A DNA stretch of 64,000 nt from Klebsormidium nitens. Lineage: Eukaryota > Plantae > Klebsormidiophyceae. Positions 8,900 through 29,672 of this stretch are shown here, piece after piece. Numbering within the stretch: the stretch's first letter is position 1; each line of letters opens with the position of its first letter. The stretch covers positions 127,718-191,717 of the forward strand of contig DF237064.1 in the NCBI GenBank assembly GCA_000708835.1. The letters run 5' to 3'. The notes beneath the pieces are model-generated. The model had not been told where the DNA came from and searched no databases. It saw nothing but the letters and a program-made list of their open reading frames with translations. Made by a program: the position numbers and the translations under genes.

Positions 8900-10121
8900 C
8901 TACCGACCTCGCGGGGCTGCCATCTGTTTTAAATGCTGAAGAGCTTTATTCTGAATCCATTTCCGGTCACATGGAATATAAGCACTCAGCTCCTCGTCGA
9001 GACTGCACAACAGACAACAATTGCGGTTGAGCTTTCACAGATCGTCTTGTTGGCACCAGTTTCCTTAATAGCATTGAAGATTCACCAAACCTGCCAACTG
9101 TACGTGTTTGAAGAGAGGTGGTTGCTGGCTCAAGGGCACAAGCAACTTGCGACCATAAGATGGAAACAGTACGACCGAGAGTCATGTCATCAGGATAACA
9201 CAAGTAAGAGAAACGGATGGAGAACTTACACGAGGGCACTGATATCATACAGGCTGTCGATATATCCTGCGGAAGGGCCGGCAGAGGAGTAAGGTGAGGG
9301 GGGTCACCTCAAAACCACGGACTCCACAGAGATGAAGGAACCAGGAAATGAGGTCCAGGTTGGATTGGCTCACCAGTATCTTGTTTTGCTTTCTGGACGA
9401 TTTTAGATCCAGCGGAGCCATCAAAAGAAGCCTGTGGCACACTTGAAGCACTCAATCTGAAGCCCAACGTTTGTGTATGCGAAGGACGTGTCCTGATGAG
9501 GAAACTTCAGAAGCATCTTCATTGGAGTGCGGTTAAAGTAACTAGAGCAATGGAAGGGGCATACCAACGAGGGTATTGCAGCTTGTGAATTGCAGACGCA
9601 GTTATGTGGGCAAGGGGCTGTGTGTGACGTCCACTCACCGAACAGGTCGGAAACATCGTAAGTAATATTCCGCACGTTGGGGCTTCTTTCTTTTAGAAGT
9701 TTCTCAAATCTTGCACATAGGGCATCCATGGCTGCACTGATGGTATCATGCGATTCCCAGGTGCGAGACCCTTGGGCCTTTTGTAGCTGATACAACATGA
9801 TTGTGTGGCCATTACTTGAGGACCCCTGCACAGCAGAGGGGGACAACAATCTGTTCAACAGAAAGCAGGAATTCAATCGACTCTGCCCGTACAGCTCAAT
9901 GCTTGCTGTCAGCTGCGTCTGCAGTACAAGACGCAAAAACTGTTTGCACACAGATGAGGCATTGTGTAGCAAAATCCTAAACCACCTGTCACATCCAGAA
10001 GTGCCTCAAAAGCATTTCTTGGGCCTGATAGAGTGTTGGCCACACAAACAGCCACATGCTCAAAAGGTGAGCAGGATGTTGAAAACCTTGTGTTACATGA
10101 CCTTTAGGTTGGGCTTACCAT
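8900..10121 (-). CDS. ERH: Enhancer of rudimentary homolog, 4 exons
   Basis: The first exon is ATG only (10121-10119, then gtaagc). Spliced product: MGSSSNGHTIMLYQLQKAQGSRTWESHDTISAAMDALCARFEKLLKERSPNVRNITYDVSDLFGYIDSLYDISALVLDEELSAYIPCDRKWIQNKALQHLKQMAAPRGR*, which matches the ERH family throughout. Confidence 0.95.
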
Positions 10122-10983
10122 TTTGCAGCGACTATGCGCCACCCGCAGATTGGGGCGCTGTGTTGAAGCTGACACCCTTGCCTCGTGGACTTCAAAGCTG
10201 CTCGGAGGCTGCAGCAGAAGCCTAAGGCAACTACGGTACTCTTGTCAATCCGTCCACCCTCACACACTTCGGGCACTGCTGTTCTGCTCGAGTTCTCAGG
10301 TTGTGGGAAAGCTGTGGAACATATGGAGCTCTTCTTGTGAACGTGCAAGACAGACACAGCGAAACGCCTAACCTTTACGTGCGGTTAGCCTAACCAGCCC
10401 GCGCCGCTGGTAACAGAATCCACCCGGAACACTCAACCGGGAAGCTGCCGCAGGACATCTCGAGGTCGGCAAACCCACCAGTGGCTGCCCTACGTTTCAC
10501 ACGATCGCCGTCGCAACAGAACAGGTTCGAAATGGTCAAGGGAACGAGAGCGACCATGCATCATGCAAGCTAGGGTTGAAAGCCACGAGAGAATCAGCTC
10601 GCAGAGTTGCAGCTGGAGGAGTGGTTGAAACATCGATGGCTGCGCAATGGCGGTGACGCACGTAGCTATTTGGAAGCTCTGCTAGCGAGCGGCATACATT
10701 CTCCTTGAGAACAGTTGATGGCAGGTGGTGGTCAGGGGCAAATCCGAAGGGCGCAGTGTATGACCTGTGAAAGAACGCAAGGTCCAAAAGCGACCTTATT
10801 GACTGCACCTGCAAACCAGCAGAAAATCATCTAGAGCACTTTCCTCGTGCTTTTCCTGATCAGGATTCCCTATCTAAGCAGTCTGATGCACATCAAAGGG
10901 GGGCCTAGCACCTTGCGGTGCATTACCAAAAGTTTCCTTTGTAGCTAGTGAGCTGGCTCCCAGCTGCAAAACCCCTCAGCATA

Positions 10984-13900
10984 ATGCACCTCTCCGCTGT
11001 GTCTTGTCTTGGGGTTGGGGCCCTCACATATTCCATCTCCCCAGCATGGCTCCTTTTTGGAGCTCTGTTTGCCACCCTGTGGGACCATTTTAGGAGTCCG
11101 GCGGCAGGCCAAACCCTACTCACTTTAATCTTCCCCTTTGTTAGCTGGCTATCTTTTCGGCTCAGTCTGATCCTCGCCTTGCTGGTACACGAATGGGCCC
11201 ACCTATTGGCGAGACTCCTCCTCCAAAGCAGAAGCTGTCTTCCTGCTGACGTTGGTGAAGCTCCGAAGCGCACAGCTGACGTCAGAAGCGCCGATTGGCG
11301 CGCCAACGTGAACCTCCGGGACTGGTGTCAGTGCTTGCTGCCATGGCGGCCCATGCCGCGAGGCATGACACCACACGTTTGTGGTCCCAGCTCAACCAGA
11401 TCAGGGGGTTCTGCTCAAGGGGGCTGGAGGGACGCCTGCGTGCGCGGGTTTGGGTGGCTTGCAAGCGCTGTGTTCTGTGTTGGAAGCTGGAGCGTGAGAG
11501 GGTCGCTGGGGCCAGTGGGCGATTCCTTGCAGGAAGAGCTGTTTCAGGTGGGCTGACGGATTGAATCCAATGTGACATCATGCCATTGCTACTACTGCCA
11601 CAGCTGTTCTGGGGTTGTTCTTTCTGGATACATTCAACTGAATTAGCTTGAAAAAGTAAAGACAATGCCAATACCAGCTGAATTGGCTCCACAGTGCACC
11701 ATTTGCTGTAAATATCCTGAGATACTCGGTGTCCATTTGATCCTTGGTGTCTAATGTCCAGGTTTAATGCAATGGCTTCCCCCATCTCTGGATTCTTTGG
11801 ACCCATTTCGTCTTGGCACCGAGGAGAGCCACTCTCATTCATGTCGCTCTCTTTCAGAGATTGCCAGCATCCATACTTGCTGAAAGACACTCGAGGCCAA
11901 TCCAGCCAGCATTTATATTTTGCCTGCTTGTGCTGTCCAGGTACCCAACATGTTTGCCCATCAATTGTTTTCACCGCGGGATCTAGAGTTGTCCTCTCCC
12001 TTGTCCCCTGTCTTCTTGCCAGGCACATTCGCTTAAGCTTTCGAGAACGAGCACATCAAGCATTTGCTCCGTGATAAGTATGCCCGTGACAAGAGGAGTG
12101 CTGAACCGACAGTGAGGTACTCAGTAAAGGTCGACCACTCCTTGCCAGGCCTGTTCCATTGTCCTGCTCTGCTCCACCCTAACGGACCTGTGCGAGATGC
12201 TGGGGCTGGCGCCGTCAAAGGCGGGCGTCTACCGCTGCGGCAACTTTGGGCTGCTTGTGGCAGGCGCAGTGGAGGGTGCCCGCTCCCGGGGGCTTGACTG
12301 CCTCCGCGTGTTGCAAGATATGGCTGCTATTTCCACGCAGGTGCGTGACAACCCTCTGGACGCGATCCCATCGACAGAATTTGTTTTAGATGACTTTAAT
12401 TGCCCGAGATACTGCCAATCAATTGTTCATTTATCTTATCTCGCGAGCTCTGTCCGGCGCAGCCGACGAGCTTCTATTCGAAGATCAGGGCACTCAGTTG
12501 ATCTTAGGTATTCGGAGTCTCCTTGGTATGGGTCAAGCTCCATGAAGATCAGCCGAGGTTTGTTGGCTGCAGCAGCTGTATGTGGAAGATGAGCTAGGTT
12601 TGTTTCTGGCTTGCGCTGGGCATAACAAGTAATGCGGTCTAATTCAACTCCGAAATCGCAGGTCCTTGCTTCTGCCTCTCGCGTACAGATTTGCCTGAAC
12701 TACCCTGCGAACGCTATCTTGTTCGTGCCCTTCACTTTAATCCAGGGTGCGCGACTCTGATGTTTGAAATAGCCACGTACTTCCGAATTGCCTGTTAATG
12801 CTGCTTGTGCAAATGATTGGTCCACAGGCAGAGACCTGTTTCCATCGCTTCCCACTCTCGACAATGAACTTAAATTCAGGGAAGCTCGATTCTAACAGCC
12901 ATTTTACAAGTAGGACTCCTGAACAGGAGGATAAGCTGGTCAAAAGAAACAAGACGCAAGAACAATCAAGGTGTCCAGCATCCCTAGTCAGTCAAACTGC
13001 AAACCATTGTGTGGGTTGATCGCATGGGTTGACGTTGGCCGCCCTTTTCATGATCCAGCGTGGCGGCCAGTCTGGGGGACTGGTGACGTTGATCCAGTCG
13101 GAGGGGGGCCAAGTAAAGGGGCTGCGCGAGCGGGTGTGCCCAACCAAGCGCCAACACCTGGCCGTGCTGGTGAGACGCCAAGTCGATGCCCACGTCGACA
13201 TTCCACGTTCTGAAAATTTGAACGTTTTCAATTTCAGGTTTCGGCGTTGCAAGTGCAGAATAGGTCGCAGCTGCCAAAAGGCTGCTACTCCATATGCAAC
13301 GTTCCCTACTACGCTGTAATTTAGCTTCATGTGATGACGGCCTTTGGACTTCAGGGCTTCGAAGTTGAGTTGTGGAAGATCGGATCCGGGGACTACGTCC
13401 TATAGATTCTCCTCTCATTTGATTACCCGCAAATATTTCAGACGAATTACCAAACGAAGACGCAAGTCGGTTTCTCATGGATCAAACCGCAAAATTAGCA
13501 GCTGAATAGAGACCGTCAGGTCATTAGTTATTGACACGCGACTTCGGCTGCGTGTTGGATTCTGAGATTGTCCGAAAAGAAGGAAGCTCAAAGCTCTCGG
13601 AGCTTTGGCTAGGTCACAATTCTGATTCATGAGCAATTTTAGGGATGCTAAACCAATTAGAAAAAGAAGCAGAAGAAGAAGACTACGAGATTGAAGAGCT
13701 AGAGGACGACCCTCCAGAGTGCTCCACCCTGAGCAGACTACTTGTGTGCTGTCTTGTTTCGCATGTTCTATCTTCTGAGCGCTTTTTGTCCTCCTCAGCT
13801 GGCGGCACGTTTCCGGCGGAAGCTGGGCTGGGCCAGCCTGTGGCAGTGGCTGCGCCGTCTGCTGCTCTGGTGGCGACCGACCGGGAAGAGCGCCCCGGGC

Positions 13901-16900
13901 GCTGGCCCCAGTGTGCGCCTCTTCCTGGGCCACACCCGGTTCGCCACGTCGAGCATCCCTAGCGTGCGCGAGAGCCACCCCCACCAGGTAAGCCGGTGAA
14001 GGACTTGCAAGAAGGCCGTGCAGTCCCCCCAGGCGTTGAATGATTCCTTAAAAATGCTGATAATCAGGTCTTGCGTTGAGGACCAGGAGTTTGCTTTGTT
14101 TGTCCCTTCTACATGACACGTTGTTGTCAAGAAAAGGCTTCGTCTTTTCTGCAAGCCACTCTTGAGACCGTCCACAGCAATCAGCCGGGCTCTTAACACA
14201 GAGTACGGCCTGTCGGACTCAACCTAGTAAGTACTGGTGCTGATTCGACCCACCGGTAGGCTCGACCCTCCGCTGCATCCCCCATCCCTCGATGCTAGAC
14301 TAATGCTGTAAGCATCTTTCTCTTTCCGAAGCAACGCGCTATTTTCAGAAGCGTTCCATCTTATACACTCCTTTGTTTTGACCTGCAGTGGACCCCCACT
14401 TTCCGTTGCAACATGTGGCGCCAGGGCCGGGGCATGCAGGCGGAGCAAGTCGGCATTTACATCACGCACAACGGAGACTTTGAGTTCTGGTCGCTCTTCG
14501 GACGTGACCGGACGCACACGGAGATGGGTTTCTGGCTGCAGGTAGGTCCAGCTTAATGCAAAATGTTATACGTGGCGGCTGTTGCAATGTGAAGGAGGGG
14601 AAAGAGTCCGAAAATCATGCAAGCGCCTCGCTGATTCCGGAGGGAAAGTTTTCGCGTGCACTGAGACTCCGAAAGTGCCAGTGCGATGTCACTGCTTGCA
14701 CGTGACGCAAATTCTGAAGCAAACGAGTCGAGTGCTATGCCGTCGTATCCGACTACGATGTGTCTACTTCGACACTGATACAGACTTCCTTGAAGCCTGA
14801 AGTTGTAAGATCTTCGTGCCGGGAAAACAATAGCCAACGAAGGAGTATTTACTGGCATTTACAACCTTCTCTCCGACTGCAGCGCGTCCTGGACTGCCCC
14901 CAGTCGGCGCACTGCGACAGCGTCATGATCGGGGGCCTCGTGGAGCTGCTGCGCACACAGGGCCTCTGGATGCACTCACTGCGCCTCGCCTACCACCAGG
15001 TAAACAGGGCCTCCACAAGCTGTTTTTAAATGACCTTGCACAGTGTCTACATTCCCTACGCTTTTGGAAACATCGCTCTGCGTTTGCACAGTCCGTGACG
15101 CATCTTTTCGACATGCTTTTGGACTCCCGTTTCGGCTCGGGGATTGCCTAGTAAGGCGAGGATCGCAAGCGATCGACCGTGGTCCTTCCATATTGCCCCG
15201 CATTCGCTTTTTACGGCGAAATACCGTCTTTGAGGAAGTCTCCTCCAAAATAATGTGCGAACTCACCGACAATCAATATTGGAGGGGTATTTGAAAGGAG
15301 GTCAGACAACACATGGTCAACACACTCTGGTAACTGGACTTCAACGGGACAGTAACTGGGCCAATTTGGGTTCTTCATTGACAGAGTATCTACTCATGTT
15401 CGTCTTGCGTGTATGCAGACGGTGACGCACTCCTTCGAAGAGGTGTTCGATTACGGCCTGCCGAGCGACCCCGCGACCGCCAACGCGGCGCCCACGCGCG
15501 CCACGCTGGACGTGCTCGCGCGCATCGCGGAGGCCGCCTTCCTGCGCTTCCTCGACCAAGCATCTCCAGGACCAGAGGTGCGCTTGGCCATCTCTTATTT
15601 TCTTAGAATGTTCTGGTTTTGTAGGGGATCGTGCCCTTTTCCGGCAGGTACCGCCAGACAGAGGCCATCCGAGCTTTGTGTTTAGCAGGTTCAAAGTTTG
15701 GAGCACGTTTCTGCGCTTCCTCGGCAAAACGAGCGGACCCCGGTATGCCACACGAGAACCTGAACCAAGTATTGGTACACAAACTAAACTTCTGTTGGTT
15801 TTCTGCTGGATGTTTGAAGCAAGGGGTTCCCCACTTTCAATTACGCCTCATCCTCACTCTCGCCTGTTCGGAATCACGAGAAATTACCAACTTGAGTTTG
15901 CTGAGTGTTGAAACGTCGAAAAGGATCGCAACAATGTCAGGAGGCATGCGCGGGCGCAAGTAGATTTCCATTGGTCCAAAAGAGGTCCACTTTCCCCTGC
16001 GGTTCGTTTGATGAACCGGGTTCCAGGCACATGTAGGCAAAGCGCAGGGTTCGTTTCCTCTCTCCTCGCTCGTGGGCGGTTTCTCAAAACTACACCCGCT
16101 GTTACATTGACGCACCGACTGTATTGGAGACGGGTGGTTTGCTCACCGAGTGTTATTTGCAAAAGCGTGCTGACGTCACTTTGTGTGTGGGCTGTATGCG
16201 CAGAGTCACCAGAGCGGACGTGTGCACGGGGAACAGGAGAGACGCGCCGGCGCCGGTCCGCACAGCATTGAGTGGACCGAAGAAAGCATGGAGAACTTAT
16301 CCCAGGTATGCCAGCGCGAAGTCTGCCGTCCACATGGAGCAGTTTCAGGATATCGACTCAACTCTAGATTGAGAGCTCCATCCAAGTGCTGAGAGGAGCG
16401 GGGCTAGACAAAGCGTCTGGATCGCACGGTTGTTGAGCGATTCGCGAGGTTTGTTATGGGTTTGCTTAGCGGGGCGGCCCCGTTGCTGGAACGTACTTAC
16501 AACCGACGCTTAAGAACCCCGCCCAAAGTACAGATCTATGAAATACGGGAGGAACACTGTCACGTTTCCGGTGCAGGCACTCAAGGCGGCAGTGCTGAGC
16601 GACGCCTCACTGCGGCTTGAGTCTTAACCAAGCTCAACTAATCAACAGAACGTACAAAGTCCACAGACTGACGACTAAACCAAGCATACAGAAAAGTTAA
16701 GAACGATAAGGAAGCCTTGCCATGTGTCTGGTGCAGGCCCTGAAGGCGGCGCTGTTGAGCGAGGCGCCGGCGCTGCTGCAGAAGAACGCCCCCGAAGGGT
16801 TCCGCACCCTGATCGAGGACCTGCAGGTCGGGCGTGGGGAGGCGTTCTTGGAGCTGCTTGCGCGGCAGGCCGTTGTCAACTTCCTGCACAACGACCTGCA

Positions 16901-19900
16901 CTGGGCCGTCAAGAAGTTCCTCGCCAATGCAAAAGTGAGCGACTTAGCTTGGTCGCCGACGAGAAAATATGAAGTTTCTGGCGGAGTCTCGGCAGTGGAC
17001 CTTCGTCAAGTCCTTCGGAACAACCTGCATTGGCCTGTCAAGAAGTTTTCTCACCAACGCTGAAGTGAGCTATGTCAGGTCGTGTCCAAAGCGATTACTT
17101 AGAACTCTGAAATGCCGATACCTACTAAGACCCGGCACTCGTTTGCAAGAGGCCGTCGTCAACTTCCACATAAGGATCTGCCGTGAAAATTTTCTCTGCA
17201 AGCCAAGGCGGGCTTGTCCTCCTCTTCCTTCCTAGAGTCTTTCATTTATAGAAGCAACCCCCGTTGGACTTCAACTCGTCGTCCTTGCTGCGCTGAAGCA
17301 GCCATTTTTTTTGAGCTGAAGCTATTGTGACGTCACTTTCGTGGGCTGAGCGGAAGGTACCTTCCTGCGCAGGGCTCGTTCGGACTGGCGGTGTGCTGCA
17401 CGCTGGACCCCAACCGCATCGTCCTGGCTCCGTTGGATCTACCGCTGTCCGTGGGCTGACGCTAAGCTGCACGTCATTTGCCCTAAGCTGCCGCTAAATC
17501 TGACGTCACCATTCTTGCGCAGGGCTCGTTCGGGCTAGCTGTGTGCTGCACCCTGGACCCCGACCGTGTCGTCTTGGCTGCCCTGAACCAGCCGCTGTCC
17601 GTGGGGCTGGCACCCGAGCAGCGCGCGGTGCTCTACTCATCAGAGGCGCAGTCTCTCAAGGTCAGAAATTTTGTGGTCAGAAGCGATCTTCGGGTTTCAC
17701 GAGCAGAGCTCGGCTCTAGAGTCAGGGGTTTTATCGTCAAAGCTATCAGACTTGACAACACTTCCCTTCTTGCCGCTTCAAGGCCTTGTCTTTGATTGCC
17801 TTTGGCGGGCAAGGTGCCCGCGCCAAGCCGTGGTCTCCTTGCCGGAAGCGTCGACTGCGAACGTTCACACAGTTTCTAAGGATCAAGTTGCTACTTTGGT
17901 TGAGAGGATAAGAGAGTTGACTTGCTTTTTGGAGGCATTGTGCGCGTGGGCTTGGAGGCAGCTTCAGAGGACCTTTAAGAACCCGCTAGTAACTCAGAGG
18001 ATCTTTAAACAAATACTATAACTAACGACTTCAGAGATGAGCTTGTATGTCACGCCCATCTTTTGTCGCCAGGGGCAAACAGACGTTGGAGGTTGTCGAC
18101 CCAATCAGCCGTTCTTCCGTAGCCTTCTGAAGCGTCGTCGTTTCTTGTCATCGAGCATTTGGCCTTCTGAAGCGTTGTCGGTCCGTCTCCAAACAGACGT
18201 CCCTCTCGAAGCCGGGCGCGAATGGACCAGTGGAAACAGTGGCGTGGCGCGTAGATCTGAACGAGGCAGACGGCGAGGTTCTGGAGATCAGGCTGACGTC
18301 AGGGGGCGGAACGCCGGGTCAGCCACCGAGCCAGTAAGTAAACCAGAAGATCAGCACTATCTTGCTTTGCGACGGCAGAGTGGTGCATGCGTCATGAATT
18401 TGAGCTTTACGCACCCCCCGAAGGAGCACCTCCCCTTGGCGTAATTTAATGGCTTCTTCGGCGTTCGCAAGTCGAGGGGAAGAGCCTGGTTGTGCCAGGG
18501 CTCCACTTCCTATCTTTTTGAACGGGGGCGGAAATTGGACCTCAACCCTACTTTCTCCGCTCCTAACCTCCGATGTTTTCTAACGACAAAAACTGGGTTT
18601 ACTTTTCCTCGTCTGCAGACACTCCACAGACGGGGAAGCTCGCAATGGAAACCCAACGAGCGGGAGTCAGAAGGGACTGGTGGCCGATCTGGAGGCCGGG
18701 AACGGGGGCGACCCGCTGATCCAGCCGCTTCCGGATGCCGATTTTCTGACGCTGCGGCTCTACAGCCGGAGGCAGGACAAAGCGATTTCTCAGGTGCGGG
18801 TCGTGCCTCACTATCTTCGCTGATGGCTCAGATAACGTCTGCGCCTTAACCGCTCGTTGCTGGTTAGAAATTGCTTGGCATAGTCTCGACACAATTATCC
18901 AGCTTGAATGCAAGCGATTCTAGGTCAGACTTTGAAGTCCTGACCATGATCTCGGCAAACGCTGGAGATTCAGTTGAGGGCGCGGGGTTGCGGACGTCGC
19001 TCTTGGCCGCGCGTATCTCATGCTCCCTCGCTGCCTCCTTGCATCCAAGAATCATCGGGAACTATTTCTGTCTCTCCTTCAACCACGCCCTATTCATCAA
19101 CAGAACCGCTGGGAGTTTCCTAAGCAGCAGGCAGGATCTTGCTTTCTTGAGAACACCTTACAAGCCGTAACGCCTCCGACCTTGGTGAACAACCCGCGGC
19201 AGTCCACTTTTTGCATCGTTCTAGTTCTGTTTTCACTATGCGTTTGCCTGTAACAACGCGCCGGATACCCATTCTTTTTGCAGTCCGAGTTCGAGGCCTC
19301 TCAGCGACTCGTACAAATGGCAGGCAACCCGTACATTACGTTCGACGACCCTGTGATAGAGCATGACCTGGTTGGAAACGACATCCAGGTACGTCTTTGT
19401 GAGCGAAAGGAACTTCGGTGTTCATCTATCTTATTCTTCTTTGTCAAAAGATCCTACAAAAAATTCCTAAGAGATCCTAAAATTTCCAAGGATGGTAATC
19501 CTTTCGAGGCAGTATACAGGGGGTATTGTCAAGGATCTTGTCGCCACGTTACTCTAATCTCAATGCCCCAGATCGTGCAAATAGCTCACGGGAAGAGAAC
19601 TATCGCTGACTGGGGAGTTTTCGATCGGAGCTGGAAGCTTTGAAGTCCTGATCGAGCAGGGTGGCTGACTTCCCTCCTATTTTCCAGGACATCCCTCGTG
19701 TTCTGGCGACCATCCGCCGCGAGTGGACCACTGTGGGCAGTCTGAATCAGCAGACAGCGGGCGCCCTCTTGGCGCTTCTCCAAGAAAAAGCGGCCATGAT
19801 TGGGGACGCGCCAGGGGATGGGAGCACGCGCAAGGAGATCGACGTGTTGGTTACAGGCGTGGAGAGCAGCCTTTGGGTCGGGGAGCAGTTTGCGGCGGAC

Positions 19901-22900
19901 CTGCAAAACTGTGAGGCCGCATTGAGCTTATTTTCTTTGATCAATAGGTGCATCCTCCACACTCACGAAGAAGAGTCTGCTTTTGCGAGCCACGCTGCTT
20001 CTGCGGAAGGTTGCCATTTGCGCATTGCCGAGCGACAAATTGTCTGCGGCTGGCTTTGCATGCAGTCTTGTTTCTCAAAACCAATCCCCCGAAGACTCCT
20101 GCAACAATTGCACGAAATGCAAATTAAGCGGCAACCAAGTTGGCGTGCTCGATACAACCTGTGACTGGGTATCATCTCTAAGTAGCTTTTCCGTTAGTAT
20201 AAACCGTGCTGAAGCTTGATAAACAGTCACCCCTCGTCAAACAGCGCTCGGGCCAGTTAGGATGCTGCTGACCTCCTACTTCGACGGAAATTTTGCAGAA
20301 AGCCGCTGTTGACTGCACCTTGTGTTGGGACCCTAAAAGTCGCTTCTAGACCTAGTCAAGCCTCTGACCATAAGCCATGTCTCTGCAGTCCTGCCCCAGT
20401 TGCGCGTCGTGCCCATCTCGAGCAACAAGGTGATCGGCGTACTGGGCAACGCCCGGGGCAAGATTTCGACGGCCGGCTTTTCCTTCTGCCGCCTCACGAG
20501 CAGCCTGCGCAGCACCATTGTGATCGCCATCAGCCAGTCGGGGCAGACGTTCCCGACCCTGCACGCCACGCGCATTCTGCAGAGGGAGTGCCCGGGGTGA
20601 GCGGCCGGGGGAAGGGTCCAGTGCATTTTGAGTGTCGGCTTGCAAAAGCCGGGAAGTCCTCAGAACTCGACCTTAGCCGAGCAACACTGCAATGTATTCC
20701 CATGAAACGGAAAGTTGTTGCTGGAGTACGCTTGCAAAGAGGTACTATATCCTCGCAGATTTAGAAGCAATTTTCTGGGGTGCTAAGGTTGGCAGTTTTT
20801 GATTCGATTCCTCTCCTGGGTCGGCCTCAACTTGCGACAAATTTGCGGCAGATTTGAACCACTTTGCGCTTCACAACTTGGTCCAGGGCCAGAGCCCAGT
20901 TTTCAATTCTTCAAGTCAACAGTACATGATTCCTCACGGTTGCGCCTTCACCGGCCTGCCTTCGAGAGTCTGCCTGCAACGGGTCTTTGACGACTTGTCT
21001 GAACGGGTCTTTGACGACAACTGAGCACGCCACGTGTCGTGTTGTAGGCGCGTGTTCGTGGTGAGCGGTCTGCTGGACGGCAAAATGTCGCAGGCGGTGG
21101 GTCAGCGACTGGAAGCCGGTGCGGCATTCTGCCAGCGCGTGTTCTGGACCGGGGCCGGCTGGCGCGCCGCGGAACCTGCAAGGTGAGGGCGGGGTATTTT
21201 GACTAGGTTCATAAAATCAAACTTGTGCCTAAGGAGTTATAGTGGTTGAGGTTGTCACGTGTCGTCGTCGATGGATTGCCAGCGCGTGGTCTGGACCAGG
21301 GCCGGCTGGCGCACTGCGCGGAACCCGCAAGGTAAGGGGAGGCGGATTAATCAGGTTTGGATAACCAAACTTGTGGCTAGTCATTTGTCACAGTGGATGG
21401 ATCATCACGGCTTTGTTTTGACTGTTTGCCACGCGGTGTCTCTACGAGAGCTGGATGTCGCGATGCAGATCGAGCTTGCGAGGTAATGGGATGCGATTTA
21501 GCGAGTTTGAGGAGCTAGATGTTTGGGAAACCGCTTATCAAAGAAGTTTTGGAATGTCGTCGCGTGGTTTTCAAAGACGGAGCTGGCTGGCGCGCTGCCG
21601 AAGCTGCAAAGTACGGGGCGGTTCTATTGAGTGCACCGTGACATGCTGAGTAAATGGGGCTTGGCTCGAGTCCAGAAAAGGTTTTGATTAGGCTGCAGTC
21701 TGACGTAGCTGTCAACAAACCGCCTCTTTTGAAGCGCATTGGGCTTCTCGGTGTTTGCAAGCCCGCAAAGCCTGCGTTTTCTTCTGATTATGATTTTGCT
21801 TGTTTGCAGTGTGTCCTGTGTTGCCGCCCACGGTTAATACTCTGACGGAGCTGCTGCTTTGTTTCGGACGTCCAGCTGAGGGCTGCCGCCAAGCAGAACC
21901 GGGACTTTTTTATTAAGTAAACGACGACCTTTATACCCTTCAAGACTTGCCTTTTGTCTCTTAAACTGTCCATAAGATTGACACTGGAATCGCTCTTTTG
22001 CAGTGTATCCTCTGTCGCCGCCCACGCTACTCTGACGGAGCTTCTGCTCTTCTTGGGCGACCAATTGAGGGCTACCGCCAAGCAGCACCGGGGTCCCGGG
22101 CCTCTTGGCCTCCGCCTCACGCGCAATGACATCAGTGAGCGCCGCTTCTTGTTTTGGCTTTAGCAAATCTTGTGGTGGTCAGTGAGATCAGAAGAAGTGG
22201 TCGGGCGGTCAGAAAAGATGGTCATCGCGTGTCAGGGGTTCTTGTGTTAGCAATTCATGGTGTCAGGCTTTCTCCAAACAGATTTATCCTTCTGGATCTT
22301 CAATTCATCATCCAGAAAGGGGATGCACTTTTCCTGAATGCTGGTCACGCTTGAAAAGAGCAAATGGTGCCCCCTGTTCGGCGAGCAACACCTTCCCTCT
22401 TTTTGTTTCAATTGTTGACTGTTTCTTCACATTGTCCCCCCAGTTCTCGTAATTGCACTCAGTATCTGACTCATGAGGATTCTCCTTTCGCTGACGGCAG
22501 AATGGGCAGAAAGACTTTTCTGACAGCAATAATTGCTGCTTGCAGAGGACATGGGCCGGGTGCGAGACGCCTTGGTTGACAGCACAGCCGGAACGTAAGT
22601 CCACTTTATCTCAGACAAACTCCAACTTAGGTAATCAGACAGTTGATCGAAGCTTTTGCCCTGCCATACGACTTCGCCAGATAAGCTATCGCGCGTGCTT
22701 CAAAAGACAAGGAAGAACAGGGTCCATTTTCTGATAGGACGCGCCAGAACTTCTGTTTGGAAGCATGCCGCAGGCGTTTCGACCTAGAGCAGAAAGACAC
22801 ATGATCAATGCGAGCTTCAAGCCCTCGTCTGCCCGAAGAGCTGTAGACCTTCTGTACGAGCTGGGAGTTCTGAATATCATCGGCCGACACAAGAAAAAGC

Positions 22901-25900
22901 AGTCTCTTGCGTTGCTTACAGAAACGTTGGAAGTCCTCTTGAAGAAGTATCTCCCCCTTACATGTCTCCATTTCTCCTCCAGGCTGACTGGATCAACCGC
23001 AAAGGGCGACCACATCCCCTCTGCGCTGCACTCTGCGCTGGTCGCCCAAGGCCGCTGCTGGGGGCACCATATCATAGAGACCCCCGTCGCATGGATGCTG
23101 TCATCCATCTACATCTTCGCAACCGTCATCTCGGGGTGGCCGCTCTTTACTGCAATACGGCGCGGGATCGGTGCAGGTGGGTGTTTTCTTGACGCCAGCT
23201 TCAGAGTGTTGCTGTGCTGACGTCAGATTCAGGGGTTACCACTGTTTGGGCGACAATGTGTGGTCTAGGGCGGGGTTATCGCGCACTGGATCGGTGGAAA
23301 GAAAGATTGTATGGATATCAACTCACTGGCGAGGGGGCCTGCCAACAAATGCTTCTCATTAAGTGTGGAAGCGCAAGTGAAGAGGCGGGTGACCAGAGGC
23401 ACAGAAAAGACGATGAGAGGGAGATAAAGTAGGCGAAGAAGGAAAAGGGACCAAATGCTGGCCTGCGACTTCGCCCCTTTCCACGTTGATTTTACCTGCC
23501 CCATCTTTCTCTATCTTCCGTCTGCCTCCTTTATCCAAGCCGTACCCTTTTACATTTGTTCATTGTCCTCTTGATTCTCCTGATTTGCAAGGCACATCAT
23601 TCTCAGCGCCTATCCTGACGTCACTCTCCCTTTACAGGCGGGCCCGGCGGCGAGTTCCTGGTGTACTTTGCGCACGCCCTGGACGCGCTTTCTTACTGCT
23701 TCCTGCCTCTCGTGTTTTCGTACCTCCTCCGTGTGATCCAAGGACGACAACTCTTGGCCCGCCTCGGGAAGAGGTGAGCTCTTTTTTCCCCACTTTGATT
23801 TGGGCCCCAACCGCTAGTCTAGGCTTGCTGACGTTTTGATAGGTAGCGTCGATTCGGATGCTTCACGGCGCCGTTTTTTGACGCACGGGTTCTTGATCGC
23901 GGAGCAGGATTTTCTTCTTCACGTTTCCTCCCTAGAATATGCGCCATTCACGTTCCTTCTGTAGTATAAGCGCCATTCAGGTTCCTTCTGTAGAATAAGC
24001 GCCAGCGAAGGAGACCTCTCATAGCATATATCACCGTTGAAGGTAGCTGAATCTGCGGACAGCACATGCAAATCCTTTCTTCAACTGTTCTATGGCGGTC
24101 GTGCTTGCTTTAGCTGCTATAACCCTGTGGCACTGTTGTTGCAGGACGCTGGTGATCGGAGACGTTCCTTACGTGCACCAGCTGCTGGAGGTGTATGTCT
24201 CCAAGCTGGTGAGTGAAGCGGAACGCGTTCGTGAGATTAAATCATTTTTCGGGGGACATTGTACAAATAATTCAGAAGCTTTCAAGATACAAGGGAGAAA
24301 GACCACAACAAAATCATTACGATGAGGAAGGAAATAAAAAGAAGAAACACGCACAGCTAAGACGGAGAAGGCAGCTTGAACAAGGATCAGTCCAAGATCT
24401 AAAAGAAATCTATCGAGCAGCTAGCATTTGACATAAACAGAACTCGCGATTTTTCAGAATCTACAGTAGAAGATTCGGGAGTAACGACGCTGGTGCTCTT
24501 CGGCTGACGTGACATCCGTTCTCCGCAGTTCGCCCTGAGCTACAGCATCGCCAGTATTGACGTACACGGCAGCAACCCACTGGACCACCTCGTACACAGG
24601 TCAGCGAGCCTTTCCGAATAGCTGAGACATGCGAGGTTTTGGAACCATTTGTCAAGGTTTGTCAAGCTTAGATCGACCTGCAAGCACTGGCCGGCCTTTG
24701 TCCGTGCAGCAACCCTGCCAAACAAGGCTCCTCAGGCCTGCGAAGTCTTGAAGGAACTAATCGTTTCTGACTAAGGCAGTCTGTTTTCTTGTTGTACGAT
24801 ATAGAAAGAAAGACACTGGGACTTGACCAAAGCCTGCCCTAATCTGATCGTACCACCTGAAAACGATGCGTAGCAAGAAGAAGCTGCCCCCCCCCTAACG
24901 TGTCGGTCCTCGAACGCCTCGGTTGACCAAGTCCGGGCTGAACTTTCGACATTTCCTTGTTGATGTCTCTCAATCTTCGTCAAGCAACTTCCTGATTCTG
25001 CAATGCTTCATTCGTTTGCAGGTTTACCCACCGCATTCCTTGTTGATGTCTGTCGATCTTCGTCAAGCAACATCCTCACCCCATATTAACCTTGTCTGTT
25101 TGCAGGTTCACCCATCGCGTGGTGCGCGGCGTGTTGCTCGCCATCGGGCGGCCGGACGGGCGGCTGTGCACGCAGACCAAGAGCGAGTCGTGGGTGCTCA
25201 TGGCGCTGCTGCAGTGCAAGTCCATCATCAACGGCGGGTGAGCCGCCACGTGTCACGTTGCGTCAGTCTGTGACGCGCCTCTGCAGATGCTGTCCTAGTT
25301 GCGCTTTCGGTGCCAGGCGTTACACGTTGCGTGACGATAATCCGTGACCCTGGTCAGTTTAGGCAAATATGTATGCCGTCACGTTCTGCAAACGCCACGG
25401 GTGTGGCCGGCGCCCTCCTAAGGAACTGAAAGAACTTTTGACACCACACTTAAAATAGGTGACTGAGCGCTGTCGCCGAAGTCAGCAGCTGGTGTCAATG
25501 TGTAGGAGGAGTGTAGGCACGTATCTTGGGCGATTGGCGCTCGTTCGTAGGCCTGGCTCCTTCCATATTGGCTACTTGTAGAAGAATCCAAGCACGACCG
25601 TTCGAGAAGACAGTTGGACGAACATAGCCTCCTCTTAATCGTAGTGCTGCCGCAGAAACGTTCAAAGCGGCCAGAATGCAAACCTCAAAGCTTCAATCCC
25701 GAGCAAGCGTCCACAAGTCCATTCGATCTTAAGACCCTACAGCTTCAGAAACCCACATATCTTTGGATCCGTGCGTTCCTCCTTGCAGTGCCGATGCTGA
25801 AACTGATACCGTGGGCCACAACCAGATGGTCCTGGTTTCCCTGACTCAATTTCTCGAGAAACCGCCCAAAGATTCTGCAATCTCAAGACCCTAAAACCTT

Positions 25901-28900
25901 CCAATGACGCATCTAGACTTTGGCATTCCTCTTTGCAGCGCCGGCGCAGAGACTTTCACGGTCGGCCATAACCCATACCGCAACCCCATGGTCATGGACG
26001 CCTCCGTAATCCTTCCGAGCAAGCGCCCCCAGTTCCTGTGCGAGAAGATGATCGGCGTGGATGCTCACGAGCCGCTCGCGCGGCTGGCCAGCATGGGCCA
26101 CGTGGTTCGCGGGGAGGGCGCACACGAAGCCGGGTCCAAGTTCCACGACCTGGACGGGCGCACTGTCGGGGAGCATCTGATGCAGGAGGGATCAGTGCAG
26201 CGCGCCCGTCGGCTTACGGTGAGGAAACCTGGTCACTTTTTGATTCAGAGTTTGGGGTGTAAACGAGTCAAGGTGGTTTTTGGTGGGCTCATGGGTCACG
26301 TGGTCCGCGGGGAGGGCGCACACGAGGCGGGGCCAAATTCCACGATTTACACGGGCAGACCGTTGGGGAGCATCATTTGATGCAGGAGGGATCGGTACAG
26401 CGTGCGCGTCGGCTCACAGTAAGTGCTGAGGGCCATCTTTGGTAGCTCCAAAGTTCTGGCGATTTGGACTTGTAAGTAAGCGTGCGCGCGCGGCGACTCA
26501 CAGTGATCCAGTTCTGTGCTTTGACGTTTCAATAGTACGAGTTTGCGAGACTTTCCGCTCGCGGGGAGGGCGCACGAGGCGGAATTAAAATCCCCATGAT
26601 TTGGACTGGCGCGCCGTTGGCAAGCATATGATGCAAGAGGGGTCGTTGGCTCACGGTATGTGTCGTGTTGCCAACAGTTTCTCTCGTTTCACGTTGTGAT
26701 GTAGAGTTCCAAAGTGTTTGGCTCGCCAAGACGGTTGACGTTGACTTTCAAAAACACGCGAGATGCCTGCTCCGAGTCCCATGATCTGACTGGGCGCAAT
26801 TTCGATGCGCGGCTGCTGAATGGAAAGTGCGGCGCGCGGAAGTGTGAAGCCTCGGAGCAACCGCCTTTACCCGTTGCGGGCGAGATTTTCGGACATACGT
26901 TCTCGTGTCCAGTACAACGAGCGGCAACTCTTCAAAGCCGTTCCTGTTGCAAGTTGTTCACGAGATCAACACGGTCATTCTGTCGCCATCAAACTTCTGA
27001 CTATATTTGGGAGATGGTACGTGATTTTGAGAATACAATTATGGAACCCAAGTCATCTGAAACGACTCTGAGAGTGTACATGTGCCGTCGCTGTGTGAGC
27101 CAGCTGTCGAAGTTCAAGTCAGCGACCCGGGGGCGTGACCAGGTTGTTTTTGCTGATAGGGCGGTCACATATGAATATTTTCGGGGTGCACCGTCCCTCA
27201 AGGACCGAAATTTCGTCCCTCGGGGACCGAAAACCGGTGATTTCGTCCCCCAGAATTTCAACTCGATATTCTGGGGGACGGTACGCCCCTCACGGACGCC
27301 GGTAAAAATACTTATGGAGGGTTGGCGGTCACTACTCGGACAGTCTGGCTCGCCGTATAATCCGGGAAGCTTCAGATTTTCGCGCGATGTGTCCCTGAGG
27401 GAAATATGACCAAAGCAGATTCTCAGGGAGCAGACGCTCCCTCAGGGAACACTCCCCACTTCCCCAAGAACTCATATGTGACCCCCCTATGAGATGGTAT
27501 TCAAGACTGAGATGGTATTCAAGACTGCCGTAACGAGCGTGTTTGTTTCCAGTTACGCTGACCATCTCTATCTCGCTTTTGCCTGCCAGCTGTCTATGCT
27601 CGCGCACGGTTCTCACCAGATCGACTCGGTGGAAGCGGGCGACCCGGGGAACCGCGAGCAGATCCTGTCCGCGATGGAACTAGACGTGCGGCGATTGTTG
27701 GACAGCCAGTCGCCTATGGAAGAATTCACCGAGAACCGCTTCCTCTCCCTCGAGCGCTACATCGCATTCCTGGTGAGTAAATAGATTGTTGTTCGAATCT
27801 GCTTTGATACTGCTCCACTTGCTTTTCGGTTCACGACTCACGAGGTTTGGACGTACCCACAGTCGATGCTGCTGACATTCCCCCGAGAAATTCGTTTGGA
27901 GTCGTAACCACGACTCCTGAGACCACGACCAAGCCGCGGATTCGGATCTGCTTACCTTCATTATACAGGTACTTGCCTTTTTTGCACCCTTTCTTATCCT
28001 TCAGGGCGACTTTTATCCATTCCCCGCCCCCAGAAGCTGAAATACGAAACTTTACAAGCGTTGGATACATTGCCGTACACCCCCGACCTTTCGAACTACC
28101 TACATCTCTCAGGTGACGTTTCACGCGATGGCGCGCACCGTGGCCTCCCTGTGGTCCCTCCGCTTGACGTGTTCCGGGTGCCCTCGTTGTATCTCTTAAC
28201 CATGTGATATTTACCATCTGACACGCAATTCACCTCTAGACCTTAAGAACAAGGGACTGTTTCACTCCCCAGGTAGCCTTCCACGCAATGGCGCGAACCG
28301 TGCTTCCCTGTGACCTCTCCGCTTCGACCTGTCCCGAATGCCCTTGTAGTCTTCCTTGTGCGTCCTGAAATAAAGCTTGAATGGATCTCTCTCTCCCTCA
28401 AACTGCGCCCATCATACCCGACTCTAACAAACACCCTGTTCTCAGTAGCAGTAAGCATCGAACTTGTTTCTTTTCCTAGGTGACCTTCCACGCGATGGCG
28501 CGAACCGTGGCCTCCCTGTGGCCCCTCCGCTTCGACGTGTCCCGCAGCCAGAGCTGCCTTCGCATCGCCACGACCGCCGCGCCGGTTTCCGCCGCCGATC
28601 TGGAGCGCGAGTGGCTCGAGAGCGCAACGGACCCGGACGAGGGCACCATCCACGTGCGCACGTTGCGCAGGCGGCCCAGGTCAGTCATCCCTCGAGCGTA
28701 TGCATTCCTTTGGTCACTAAATCAGTTATGAGGAAGAAGCAACAGGCCCATGTTCGACTGCGTGTGTATACTCCAACCAACCTCGGCAGACTATACTGGG
28801 ACGTACCCCTGAGATGGTTGAAGAAGATTGGTCAAGCCAAGGCCGCCACTTTCGGATTCGCACCGCCTAAAAGGCACTTTTTGTGGGAGTAGAAAGCCGG

Positions 28901-29672
28901 CTCCTTCCTCCCTTCTCTTTGTTGATGTCCCTTGTCCTACGTATTGTCTTCTACCTTGTCATCTCTTCCTCGTGCAGCACTGACGTCCACGTGTCCCCTG
29001 TGCAGCTTTTCGGGTGCCGACCAATACCCGGACCGCCACACGATGCCCTCGGTCCGGGGAGCCGCCCCGCTCTTCGCTTCCGTCCTTTCCGGCTTCCGCC
29101 GCTCCCCTTCCGCCTCCAAGTCCCCGCTCCTCGAGGGCGGATCCCAACGCGGGTCCTCCCAGCGCAAAACCAGCTTCGACCTCAAGGATTTGTCTGCACG
29201 GGGGGGGAAGCACGCGGGCGCGGTTCTACCCCCCCTCCACATTCAAGATGTCTCCGTTAAGGGGGGCACGGCCCGGCTGAACGTTAGCCCCGGAAGTTCG
29301 TTGAGGGGGGGCATGTTGGGGTTACCGAGCCCGGCGGTACACGCAGGGGGATCCCTCCGGGGGGGGAACGCAGTTGCGGGGCTGGCCCTCTGGCAGGGGG
29401 GGTCCCGGAGGGGAAGCACCGGGGGCCTGAGTGTGTTGGACGTGTTGCGAGAAGGGGCCTCGGAAACGGCCCTCGGAAAGGAGGAGCGGAGCCCGAGAAG
29501 CGACCGGGATAAGGAGTTGGCGGGAGCGGAGGGGCAGAGGGTGAGAAACGGACGAAGCGACGCGTTGCGTGCCAATTATGAAGACGGGGGTGCGACGAGT
29601 GACGACGCGCGCGATGATGGGGAGAGGGGGCCCGGACGGAGACGGAAGGGCAAGCCCGTGTTGGATTCTTGA
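10984..29672 (+). CDS. Large membrane-anchored GlmS-like protein: HExxH (M50/M50B-like) membrane domain + class II glutamine amidotransferase (Ntn) + SIS + TM insertion + degenerate second SIS + low-complexity tail; 27 exons, ~1670 aa
   Basis: Exons: 10984-11547, 12149-12340, 13059-13169, 13799-13987, 14389-14541, 14883-14999, 15419-15577, 16204-16305, 16737-16934, 17523-17660, 18197-18333, 18619-18793, 19284-19388, 19688-19910, 20389-20596, 21048-21182, 22004-22134, 22546-22594, 22983-23176, 23638-23773, 24145-24208, 24529-24599, 25106-25237, 25939-26218, 27590-27772, 28480-28679, 29006-29672. All are GT-AG and phase-consistent, totalling 5013 nt. Motifs: VHEWAH, CGNFG, RGGQSGG, GHTRFATS, HPH, HNGD, IAISQSGQT. 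The start codon is the least certain part. Confidence 0.85.
16566..17460 (+). repeat. Cluster of intronic exon-echo copies around GlmS-like exons 16737-16934 and 17523-17660
   Basis: Acceptor echo 16570-16611 (ggtgcag|GCACTCAAGGCGGCAGTGCTGAGC). Donor echoes 17004-17070 (ends gtgagc) and ~17148-17205. Acceptor echo 17361-17460 (tgcgcag|GGCTCGTTCGGACTGGCGGTGTGCTGC), 150 bp before the real exon start. Confidence 0.9.
21276..21905 (+). repeat. Exon-echo copies: two donor-side copies of exon 21048-21182 and one acceptor-side copy of exon 22004-22134
   Basis: 21276-21337 (TTGCCAGCGCGTGGTCTGGACC...GCAAG|gtaagg), 21556-21616, and 21803-21905 (tttgcag|TGTGTCCTGTGTTGCCGCCCACGG...GCCAAGCAGAACCGGG). Confidence 0.88.
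23941..24004. repeat. 29-bp tandem repeat (2 copies plus a partial) in an intron
   Basis: GCGCCATTCACGTTCCTTCTGTAGTATAA / GCGCCATTCAGGTTCCTTCTGTAGAATAA / GCGCCA. Confidence 0.9.
24953..25037 (+). repeat. 84-bp tandem duplication of intron end, acceptor and first bases of exon 25106
   Basis: TTCCTTGTTGATGTCT..ATCTTCGTCAAGCAAC occurs twice. tttgcag|GTTTACCCACCGC (25022) mirrors tttgcag|GTTCACCCATCGC (25106). Confidence 0.85.
26286..26800 (+). repeat. Donor-side echoes of GlmS-like exon 25939-26218
   Basis: 26286-26424 (ATGGGTCACGTGGTCCGCGGGGAGGGCGCACACGAGG...CGGCTCACA|gtaagt), 26557-26664 (ends GGCTCACG|gtatgt), and fragments near 26480 and 26770. Confidence 0.9.
27157..27489. mobile_element. 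Putative MITE (~330 bp) with 16-bp terminal inverted repeats and TA target-site duplication, in a GlmS-like gene intron
   Basis: Left end TA|GGGCGGTCACATATGA (27157-27174). Right end TCATATGTGACCCCCC|TA (27472-27489), one mismatch. Internal hairpin GTCCCCCAGAAT...ATTCTGGGGGAC and repeated GGACCGAAA/TTTCGTCC motifs. No transposase-like ORF. Confidence 0.72.
28105..28345 (+). repeat. Two acceptor-side echoes of GlmS-like exon 28480-28679
   Basis: ctcag|GTGACGTTTCACGCGATGGCGCGCACCGTGG (28113) and cccag|GTAGCCTTCCACGCAATGGCGCGAACCGTG (28274), versus the real cctag|GTGACCTTCCACGCGATGGCGCGAACCGTGG (28480). Confidence 0.9.

Follow-up and report, generated by a model that had tools for sequence, protein, structure and literature searches.

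A site-2-protease-like domain fused in front of the putative catalytic cysteine of a candidate class II amidotransferase in Klebsormidium nitens and other algae

Catalysis by class II amidotransferases depends on an N-terminal cysteine with a free amino group. In the 64,000-nucleotide stretch of the Klebsormidium nitens genome analysed here (assembly GCA_000708835.1, contig DF237064.1, positions 127,718 to 191,717, forward strand; hereafter the window, to whose own numbering all positions refer), we found an expressed gene that spans about 18.7 kb and at least 27 exons and whose product carries the corresponding cysteine at residue 218, behind a polytopic domain that resembles the core of site-2 proteases. 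The same layout is common to about 40 relatives from five lineages: streptophyte algae, chlorophyte algae, haptophytes, diatom-like stramenopiles and cryptophytes. This fusion joins two known kinds of protein in a way that has not been described, and the proteins themselves are public but carry no functional annotation. To our knowledge, class II amidotransferases and site-2 proteases, both well studied, have not previously been linked. As for what such an arrangement might do, we put at somewhat under one half (about 0.45) the probability that the protein is an inactive precursor, activated by an exact cut before Cys218, with the fused metalloprotease-like domain as the most likely cutter.

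One transcript, one reading frame

The window has a G+C content of about 52%, and its reading frames are fragmented, in keeping with an intron-rich eukaryotic genome. In frame 1, a stop codon is followed by an ATG at 10984, which opens a strongly hydrophobic exon of 188 codons. A segment in another frame (12149-12340) reads ...STLTDLCEMLGLAPSKAGVYR-CGNFG..., and further open reading frame pieces bear RGGQSGG, GHTRFATS followed by HPH, HNGDFEF and HCDS. A note made earlier from the letters of this DNA (the original prediction) had located HEWAH, TLTDL, VYR-CGNFG, RGGQSGG, GHTRFATS, HPH, HNGD and CDS, and all of its coordinates proved correct.

That these pieces belong together is evident from transcript data. 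About one-third of the sampled words of 10700-15700 are present in sequencing runs of seven studies, which matches the expectation for spliced RNA. Transcript-like contigs from four of the seven, the runs being flagged only as probable RNA, were placed on 10001-16000. Each of the four studies contributed a single long contig of 1.3-5.1 kb, which begins at 10573-10669 and continues past the ATG at 10984 as far as 11547 before the first skipped part. Skipped in the contigs are 11548-12148, 12341-13058, 13170-13798, 13988-14388, 14542-14882 and 15000-15418, all of them bounded by GT..AG and in phase 0. In contigs from all four studies, exon 1 is joined in frame to exon 2 (11547 to 12149), and the cysteine of CGNFG is residue 218 of the joined frame (188 codons from exon 1 and 30 from exon 2). 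These intron-less joints show real splicing and confirm that exon 1 and the amidotransferase form one transcript with one reading frame, as had been supposed. The original prediction would have been undermined had exon 1 been a separate gene or had transcripts begun just before CGNFG; the contigs begin upstream of the first ATG, and exon 1 as a separate gene or an untranslated leader is ruled out by the spliced contigs together with conservation in a related alga.

Read evidence extends up to 16000 and covers exons 1-7, with a transcript loose end giving the start of exon 8; boundaries after exon 7 come from comparison and splice signals, not from reads. The next exon begins at 16204, and an open frame ends at 29672. 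A genomic contig of the related alga (L001, found through the relative P0001) displays exon-by-exon conservation and diverged introns up to window position 26107, which corresponds to the end of L001, and full-length relatives can be mapped by tblastn as far as 28632.

A predicted glutaminase on the Ntn fold

In an alignment of 20 family members, C-G-N-F-G, R-G-x-Q-x-x-G, G-H-T-R-F-A-T-x-S, H-P-H, H-N-G-D and D-S are invariant, and all of these motifs are present in the window protein. The glutamine-site residues R91 (the Arg of GHTR), T94, N139 and G140 (the Asn-Gly oxyanion pair) and D174 are invariant as well and occur in the window protein, their equivalence to GlmS having been assigned by motif matching, not by superposition. 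In the structural model of the domain, built on a relative and of alpha-beta-beta-alpha type (predicted local distance difference test score, pLDDT, 88.7), the cysteine stands at residue 1 and is followed by a strand at residues 2-8. The top 50 Foldseek matches of this model are all GFAT-1, GlmS or PurF (E about 1e-6, probability 1.0), and TM-scores normalised to the glutaminase domain of GlmS in isolation are 0.62-0.63. The domain is thus confidently modelled as a class II (N-terminal nucleophile, Ntn) glutaminase with Cys218 as the nucleophile, and the GlmS-like glutamine site recognised in the original prediction turns out to be conserved on an Ntn fold. Because every glutamine-site residue is invariant, the family very likely represents active glutaminases that would need a cut before Cys218.

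The relationship to GlmS and PurF is barely visible to sequence methods alone. The Pfam models GATase_2, GATase_4, GATase_6 and GATase_7 do not match the full-length relatives. The best PDB match of a glutaminase profile is PurF, the right family at a non-significant E of 0.8, and a phmmer search of the PDB with residues 235-1300 of another Klebsormidium protein (P0002) returned nothing. The profile check that had been proposed, with Peptidase_M50/M50B, GATase and SIS models, came out negative throughout Pfam.

The domain in front of the cysteine

The N-terminal domain, polytopic and about 200 residues long, is modelled as a minimal site-2-protease core; we call it M50-like rather than a member of M50. 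Across a 28-sequence alignment with a mean column identity of 16%, the H, E and H of HExxH and the Gly and Ser of a G-W..S motif are invariant, and the Asp of (S/T)-D-(L/A) is present wherever the segment is included. Conservation of HExxH and a distal Asp in homologues, on which the original prediction leaned, is therefore borne out. HExxH lies 96-260 residues before the cysteine in nearly all members, and the cysteine follows the conserved Asp by about 14-35 residues. Invariance of this context of H, E, H, Asp and Cys across about 40 distant relatives means that the pattern is not due to chance. Moreover, since the Glu of HExxH proteases is the catalytic base and not a metal ligand, its invariance argues for hydrolysis beyond metal binding.

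Comparisons at several levels lead toward the same group of proteins. The look-alikes of exon 1 by ESM features are bacterial Peptidase_M50 clusters (score 0.91, 171-174 shared features). Near-top PDB matches of the family profile include SpoIVFB (E 0.73) and RseP (E 1), neither of them significant. An AlphaFold model of the domain, built on the member from the cryptophyte Hemiselmis with the family alignment (pLDDT 83.5, predicted TM-score 0.77), places HExxH within a helix spanning residues 37-77 and the Asp at the end of the last helix. When this model was compared by VIA-align with 48,161 solved chains, ranks 1-4 were taken by SpoIVFB (Z 7.4), two RseP structures (Z 6.6 and Z 6.2) and the site-2 protease of M. 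jannaschii (Z 6.5), at root mean square deviations of 3.2-4.1 over 109-124 residues, Z values below 8 not being decisive for helical models. In the aligned ranges, HExxH and the Asp are in register with the known zinc ligands of these enzymes. The only beta bridge of the model connects the loop after HExxH (window Val132-Cys133) with positions -3 and -2 before the cysteine (window Val215-Tyr216). Site-2 proteases bind their substrates by strand pairing of this kind. The M50-type domain of the original prediction thus finds support in the nearest solved structures, but not at the level of the Pfam M50 and M50B models.

Like SpoIVFB, RseP and the M. jannaschii enzyme, the window protein would place HExxH in a membrane helix and an Asp in a helix further along, and its loop after the HExxH helix would be able to pair with a substrate strand. 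Unlike them, it has no PDZ or CBS domains, reads xTDL in place of LDG and is without a Pfam match. Its presumed substrate is also of a different kind, being not a separate membrane protein but the C-terminal remainder of the same chain. We know of no site-2 protease that acts in cis.

An algal protein family

Exon 1 is 44-49% identical to the orthologous exon of the related alga. Searching 1.84 billion representative proteins with an exon 1 profile brought up nine, each of which either has the N-terminal domain ahead of CGNFG or is a fragment of such a protein; they include K. nitens GAQ85582.1 (P0002, 1418 residues), a Closterium protein and a Hemiselmis transcript. A search with P0002 found 36 long relatives (830-2260 residues) from Closterium, Volvox, Gonium, Chlamydomonas incerta, Pycnococcus, Chrysochromulina, Diacronema, a Thalassiosira-labelled transcript and unlabelled metagenomes. 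Among the proteins retrieved by our searches for relatives there were none from land plants, nor any stand-alone relatives of the N-terminal domain: a two-sequence profile searched against the 1.84 billion representatives and a word search with the 28-sequence profile gave only N-termini of the fused family or their fragments. By tblastn, P0002 and other relatives are 40-88% identical to the window gene, which would fit the latter being a paralogue of P0002.

In the databases these proteins are named hypothetical or, for some UniRef members, 'Glutamine amidotransferase type-2 domain-containing'. Pfam recognised no domain in seven relatives at E up to 0.01, which left 1,400-2,200 residues unaccounted for, and neither Pfam nor NCBIfam gave anything above threshold for single exons or full-length relatives. 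In our literature search we came across no description of an amidotransferase fused to a site-2-protease or M50 domain. Stramenopile-type members (P0023, P0025, P0026, P0033-P0042) bear EF-hand domains (PF13405, PF13499); these are absent from the green-algal members.

One member departs from the common layout. The Diacronema lutheri protein P0044 (contig L003, 3920-4120) has no N-terminal domain: its open reading frame opens after a stop codon and begins Met-Cys-Gly-Asn-Leu-Gly. The 600 bases upstream of this start contain no frame bearing HExxH, and a neighbouring gene on the opposite strand ends about 600 bp upstream. Taken together with the lack of conservation of Met204 in the window protein, this natural Met-Cys start without the N-terminal domain fixes the place where the mature N-terminus should lie.

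How might Cys218 become N-terminal?

We propose that the protein would be made inactive, since enzymes of this class depend on the cysteine having its alpha-amino group free, and that a cut of the chain exactly before Cys218 would yield the active enzyme. The most likely cutter would be the fused metalloprotease-like domain, which would cleave in cis. The segment before the cysteine would fold back as a strand against the loop following HExxH, much as substrates of site-2 proteases do; after the cut, an internal hairpin would retain the enzyme in the membrane, and ammonia derived from glutamine might be passed, GlmS-like, to a phosphosugar acceptor. Cutting in cis by the fused domain is favoured by its invariant catalytic Glu, by its position always directly before the cysteine, by the sole beta bridge of the model falling on the residues that precede the cysteine, and by a hydrophobic position -2 next to a variable position -1. 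In 39 of 40 relatives, an aromatic or hydrophobic residue (F, Y, L or C) occupies position -2, and position -1 may be F, Y, L, R, H, W, Q, A or C. The Arg-Cys bond named as the cleavage site in the original prediction is accordingly not a conserved feature; only -2 is constrained.

Several observations weigh against this proposal. Exon 1 matches no Pfam family at E up to 5, M50 and M50B (PF02163, PF13398) included, and searches with the model of the N-terminal domain, by Foldseek against the PDB and by shape in the ESM Atlas, gave nothing useful. Z scores of 6-7 are reachable by chance for helical models, and the model itself was built on a cryptophyte relative, not on the window's own protein. 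The canonical second motif of M50, NxxPxxxLDG, is replaced by xTDL. A prasinophyte-like relative, P0017, has LQWAH in place of HExxH while keeping the Asp helix, the cysteine and the glutamine site; it was found on a metagenomic contig (L004, 9701-10180), which is eukaryotic, with a UCH peptidase C12 and prefoldin as neighbours. No processed form of any kind is known. Finally, in class II amidotransferases with extra residues before the cysteine, the short propeptide is removed in a step described as autocatalytic (PMC9140057), so a protease is not strictly needed.

This last point is the starting point of the main rival, ordinary Ntn self-processing, which is a serious one even if we regard it as rather unlikely. 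The glutaminase domain would itself break the X-Cys218 bond by an N-to-S acyl shift, and the M50-like domain would be released, or else retained, as a membrane anchor or a protease for other substrates, making the gene in effect code for a two-enzyme polyprotein. The few residues preceding the cysteine in enzymes of MEROPS family C44 are described as being cleaved autocatalytically (PMC9140057), the Ntn fold is confidently modelled here, and the LQWAH relative with its degenerate HExxH retains the cysteine and the glutamine site. Self-processing leaves unexplained that a protease-like domain should stand directly before the cysteine in five algal lineages and keep its catalytic residues invariant, and that the model docks the strand preceding the cysteine onto that domain.

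It is less probable still that no cut takes place and that the full-length protein works as a pseudo-glutaminase, either a glutamine sensor or an enzyme using free ammonia, with HExxH and Asp forming a structural or regulatory metal site. Pseudo-amidotransferases are reported to exist (PMC7605207), and a family too divergent for the Pfam GATase models, in which processing has not been seen, could be one of them. However, the cysteine and all the glutamine-site residues are invariant, as is the catalytic Glu of HExxH, and the Diacronema member begins Met-Cys like a working Ntn enzyme. Least probable of all is exposure of the cysteine from outside, by an unrelated cellular protease (as in organelle import) or through a minor transcript or translation start at Met204 that leaves a short propeptide: five upstream ATGs in the 5' leader, one run's low-depth contig inside intron 1 (11882-12088) and the exposure of Cys1 in plant ferredoxin-GOGAT by transit-peptide removal are in its favour, but all four main transcript contigs begin upstream of the ATG at 10984, the N-terminal domain is conserved far beyond the level of a targeting peptide, and a start at Met204 is rejected, as this residue is Leu in the orthologue and its lack of conservation argues against an internal start. 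In the plant enzyme, the Ntn Cys1 becomes N-terminal only once a long presequence has been removed; that presequence is a plastid transit peptide handled by the stromal processing peptidase, whereas the segment preceding Cys218 is a conserved, catalytic-looking domain.

Activation by the fused domain can also be set beside PurF-type enzymes with an 11-residue propeptide (B. subtilis, vertebrate PPAT), which likewise carry residues before the catalytic cysteine that have to be removed (PMC9140057). There, a few soluble residues are self-cleaved; in the algal family, the segment is a polytopic domain of 120-380 residues with protease-like catalytic residues. More tentatively than the cut itself, we suggest that a minimal intramembrane zinc protease may have become the built-in pro-domain of a metabolic enzyme, a single cut in cis before the Ntn cysteine switching on the amidotransferase, with a role for calcium through the EF-hands possible in some lineages. 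Were this true, it would represent the first site-2 protease to act in cis and the first amidotransferase gated by a protease, and it would mean a new control of nitrogen or amino-sugar metabolism at an algal membrane. If the fused domain does the cutting, the family would also offer a natural single-chain model for the way in which intramembrane metalloproteases capture their substrates, with a fixed 1:1 geometry of enzyme and substrate. Even if the Ntn domain cuts itself, what remains is a large, widespread and unannotated family of algal enzymes.

Downstream domains

Beyond the glutaminase, the protein continues with regions that are probably SIS-like. The SIS phosphate loop is present as ISQSGQT and conserved in the family; it is followed by a pair of hydrophobic helices and then by a strongly conserved block with DHLVHRFTHRV..GRPDGR. 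Single exon pieces give NCBIfam glmS matches of 13-16 bits, far below the cut-off of 381-418 bits, yet at colinear profile positions. The top four PDB matches of a profile of the SIS region are all SIS proteins, at non-significant E values of 0.06-0.7, and the language-model lead for the region scores 0.82-0.86.

With GlmS and GFAT the window protein shares the order in which a predicted Ntn glutaminase precedes what are probably SIS-type domains, as well as counterparts of the motifs RGxDSxG, GHTRWAT, HPH, HNG and xD and of the S-x-S-G-x-T phosphate loop; the best fold matches of its glutaminase model, as given above, are GFAT-1 and GlmS. It differs from them in having the cysteine at residue 218 and not at 2, a large helical insert in the glutaminase, a predicted membrane hairpin between the SIS-like halves and a different C-terminus, in being about three times longer, and in falling below the Pfam and NCBIfam thresholds. 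As for the membrane tethering foreseen in the original prediction, this mid-protein hairpin would keep the enzyme attached once the N-terminal domain had been cut off.

Feature coordinates and further observations

The features of the gene are collected in Table 1.

Table 1. Features of the fusion gene in window coordinates
Feature	Position	Strand	Basis and remarks
5' untranslated region	10573..10983	+	Contig starts at 10573-10669; five short upstream ATG reading frames; in-frame stop at 10942-10944
Exon 1, coding part, residues 1-188; M50-like domain without its last helix	10984..11547	+	Spliced to exon 2 in four studies
HEWAH (His69, Glu70, His73; codons 69-73)	11188..11202	+	In predicted long membrane helix; H, E, H invariant
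Val132-Cys133 of conserved P-H-V loop	11377..11382	+	DSSP of the model and residue mapping; equivalent of model strand pairing with -3/-2
G-W-L-A-S motif, Gly157 to Ser161	11452..11466	+	Gly and Ser invariant
Intron 1, 601 nt, GT..AG	11548..12148	+	Transcript contigs
Exon 2: last N-terminal-domain helix with TLTDL, 16-residue linker, Cys218, first Ntn strand and helix	12149..12340	+	
Asp201 (TLTDL), candidate third zinc ligand	12185..12187	+	Invariant wherever the segment is present
Cys218 (CGNFG), candidate Ntn nucleophile	12236..12238	+	CGNFG invariant; in the model, start of strand 2-8 of a GlmS/PurF-type fold
Exons 3-7, glutaminase core	13059-13169, 13799-13987, 14389-14541, 14883-14999, 15419-15577	+	Splice joints
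Motifs: RGGQSGG in exon 3; GHTRFATS and HPH in exon 4; HNGD in exon 5; CDS in exon 6		+	In frame
Exons 8-10, helical insert and last glutaminase strands (GSFGL...)	16204-16305, 16737-16934, 17523-17660	+	Exon 8 start from transcript loose end; other boundaries from comparison and splice signals
Exons of first SIS-like domain (approximate)	19688..22139	+	Conserved with L001, P0002 and P0004; ISQSGQT at about 20385-20597
Two exons with conserved hydrophobic helix pair (predicted membrane hairpin) between SIS-like halves	22984..23774	+	Sequence; conserved in L001, P0002 and P0004
C-terminal exons (approximate): second SIS-like region, DHLVHRFTHRV..GRPDGR, conserved tail	24143..29672	+	Likely stop at 29670-29672, without read confirmation

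The 5' leader is about 320-410 nt long, and the short reading frames opened by its five upstream ATGs have 6-38 codons, which suggests that the main open reading frame is translated inefficiently or under control. The low-depth contig of 207 nt within intron 1 was seen in one of the four runs (X1) and may reflect intron retention or a minor internal start. Upstream of the gene, a separate and more deeply covered transcript contig ends at about 10270-10300; it covers 10118-10300, with a spliced continuation before 10118, and the intergenic gap between this neighbour and the transcript start of the fusion gene is about 270-370 nt.

In the part of the gene beyond exon 7, local tandem duplications with a period of 150-200 bp and 75-90% identity copy exon edges into the adjoining intron. 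The duplicated pairs are 17362-17455 and 17512-17605, 21130-21171 and 21277-21318 (and also 21578-21630), and 26092-26200 and 26290-26400. The copy at 17362 has a usable acceptor (TTGCGCAG followed by GG) and an open frame and could be a pseudo-exon or an alternative exon; in the related alga it is the downstream copy that is conserved.

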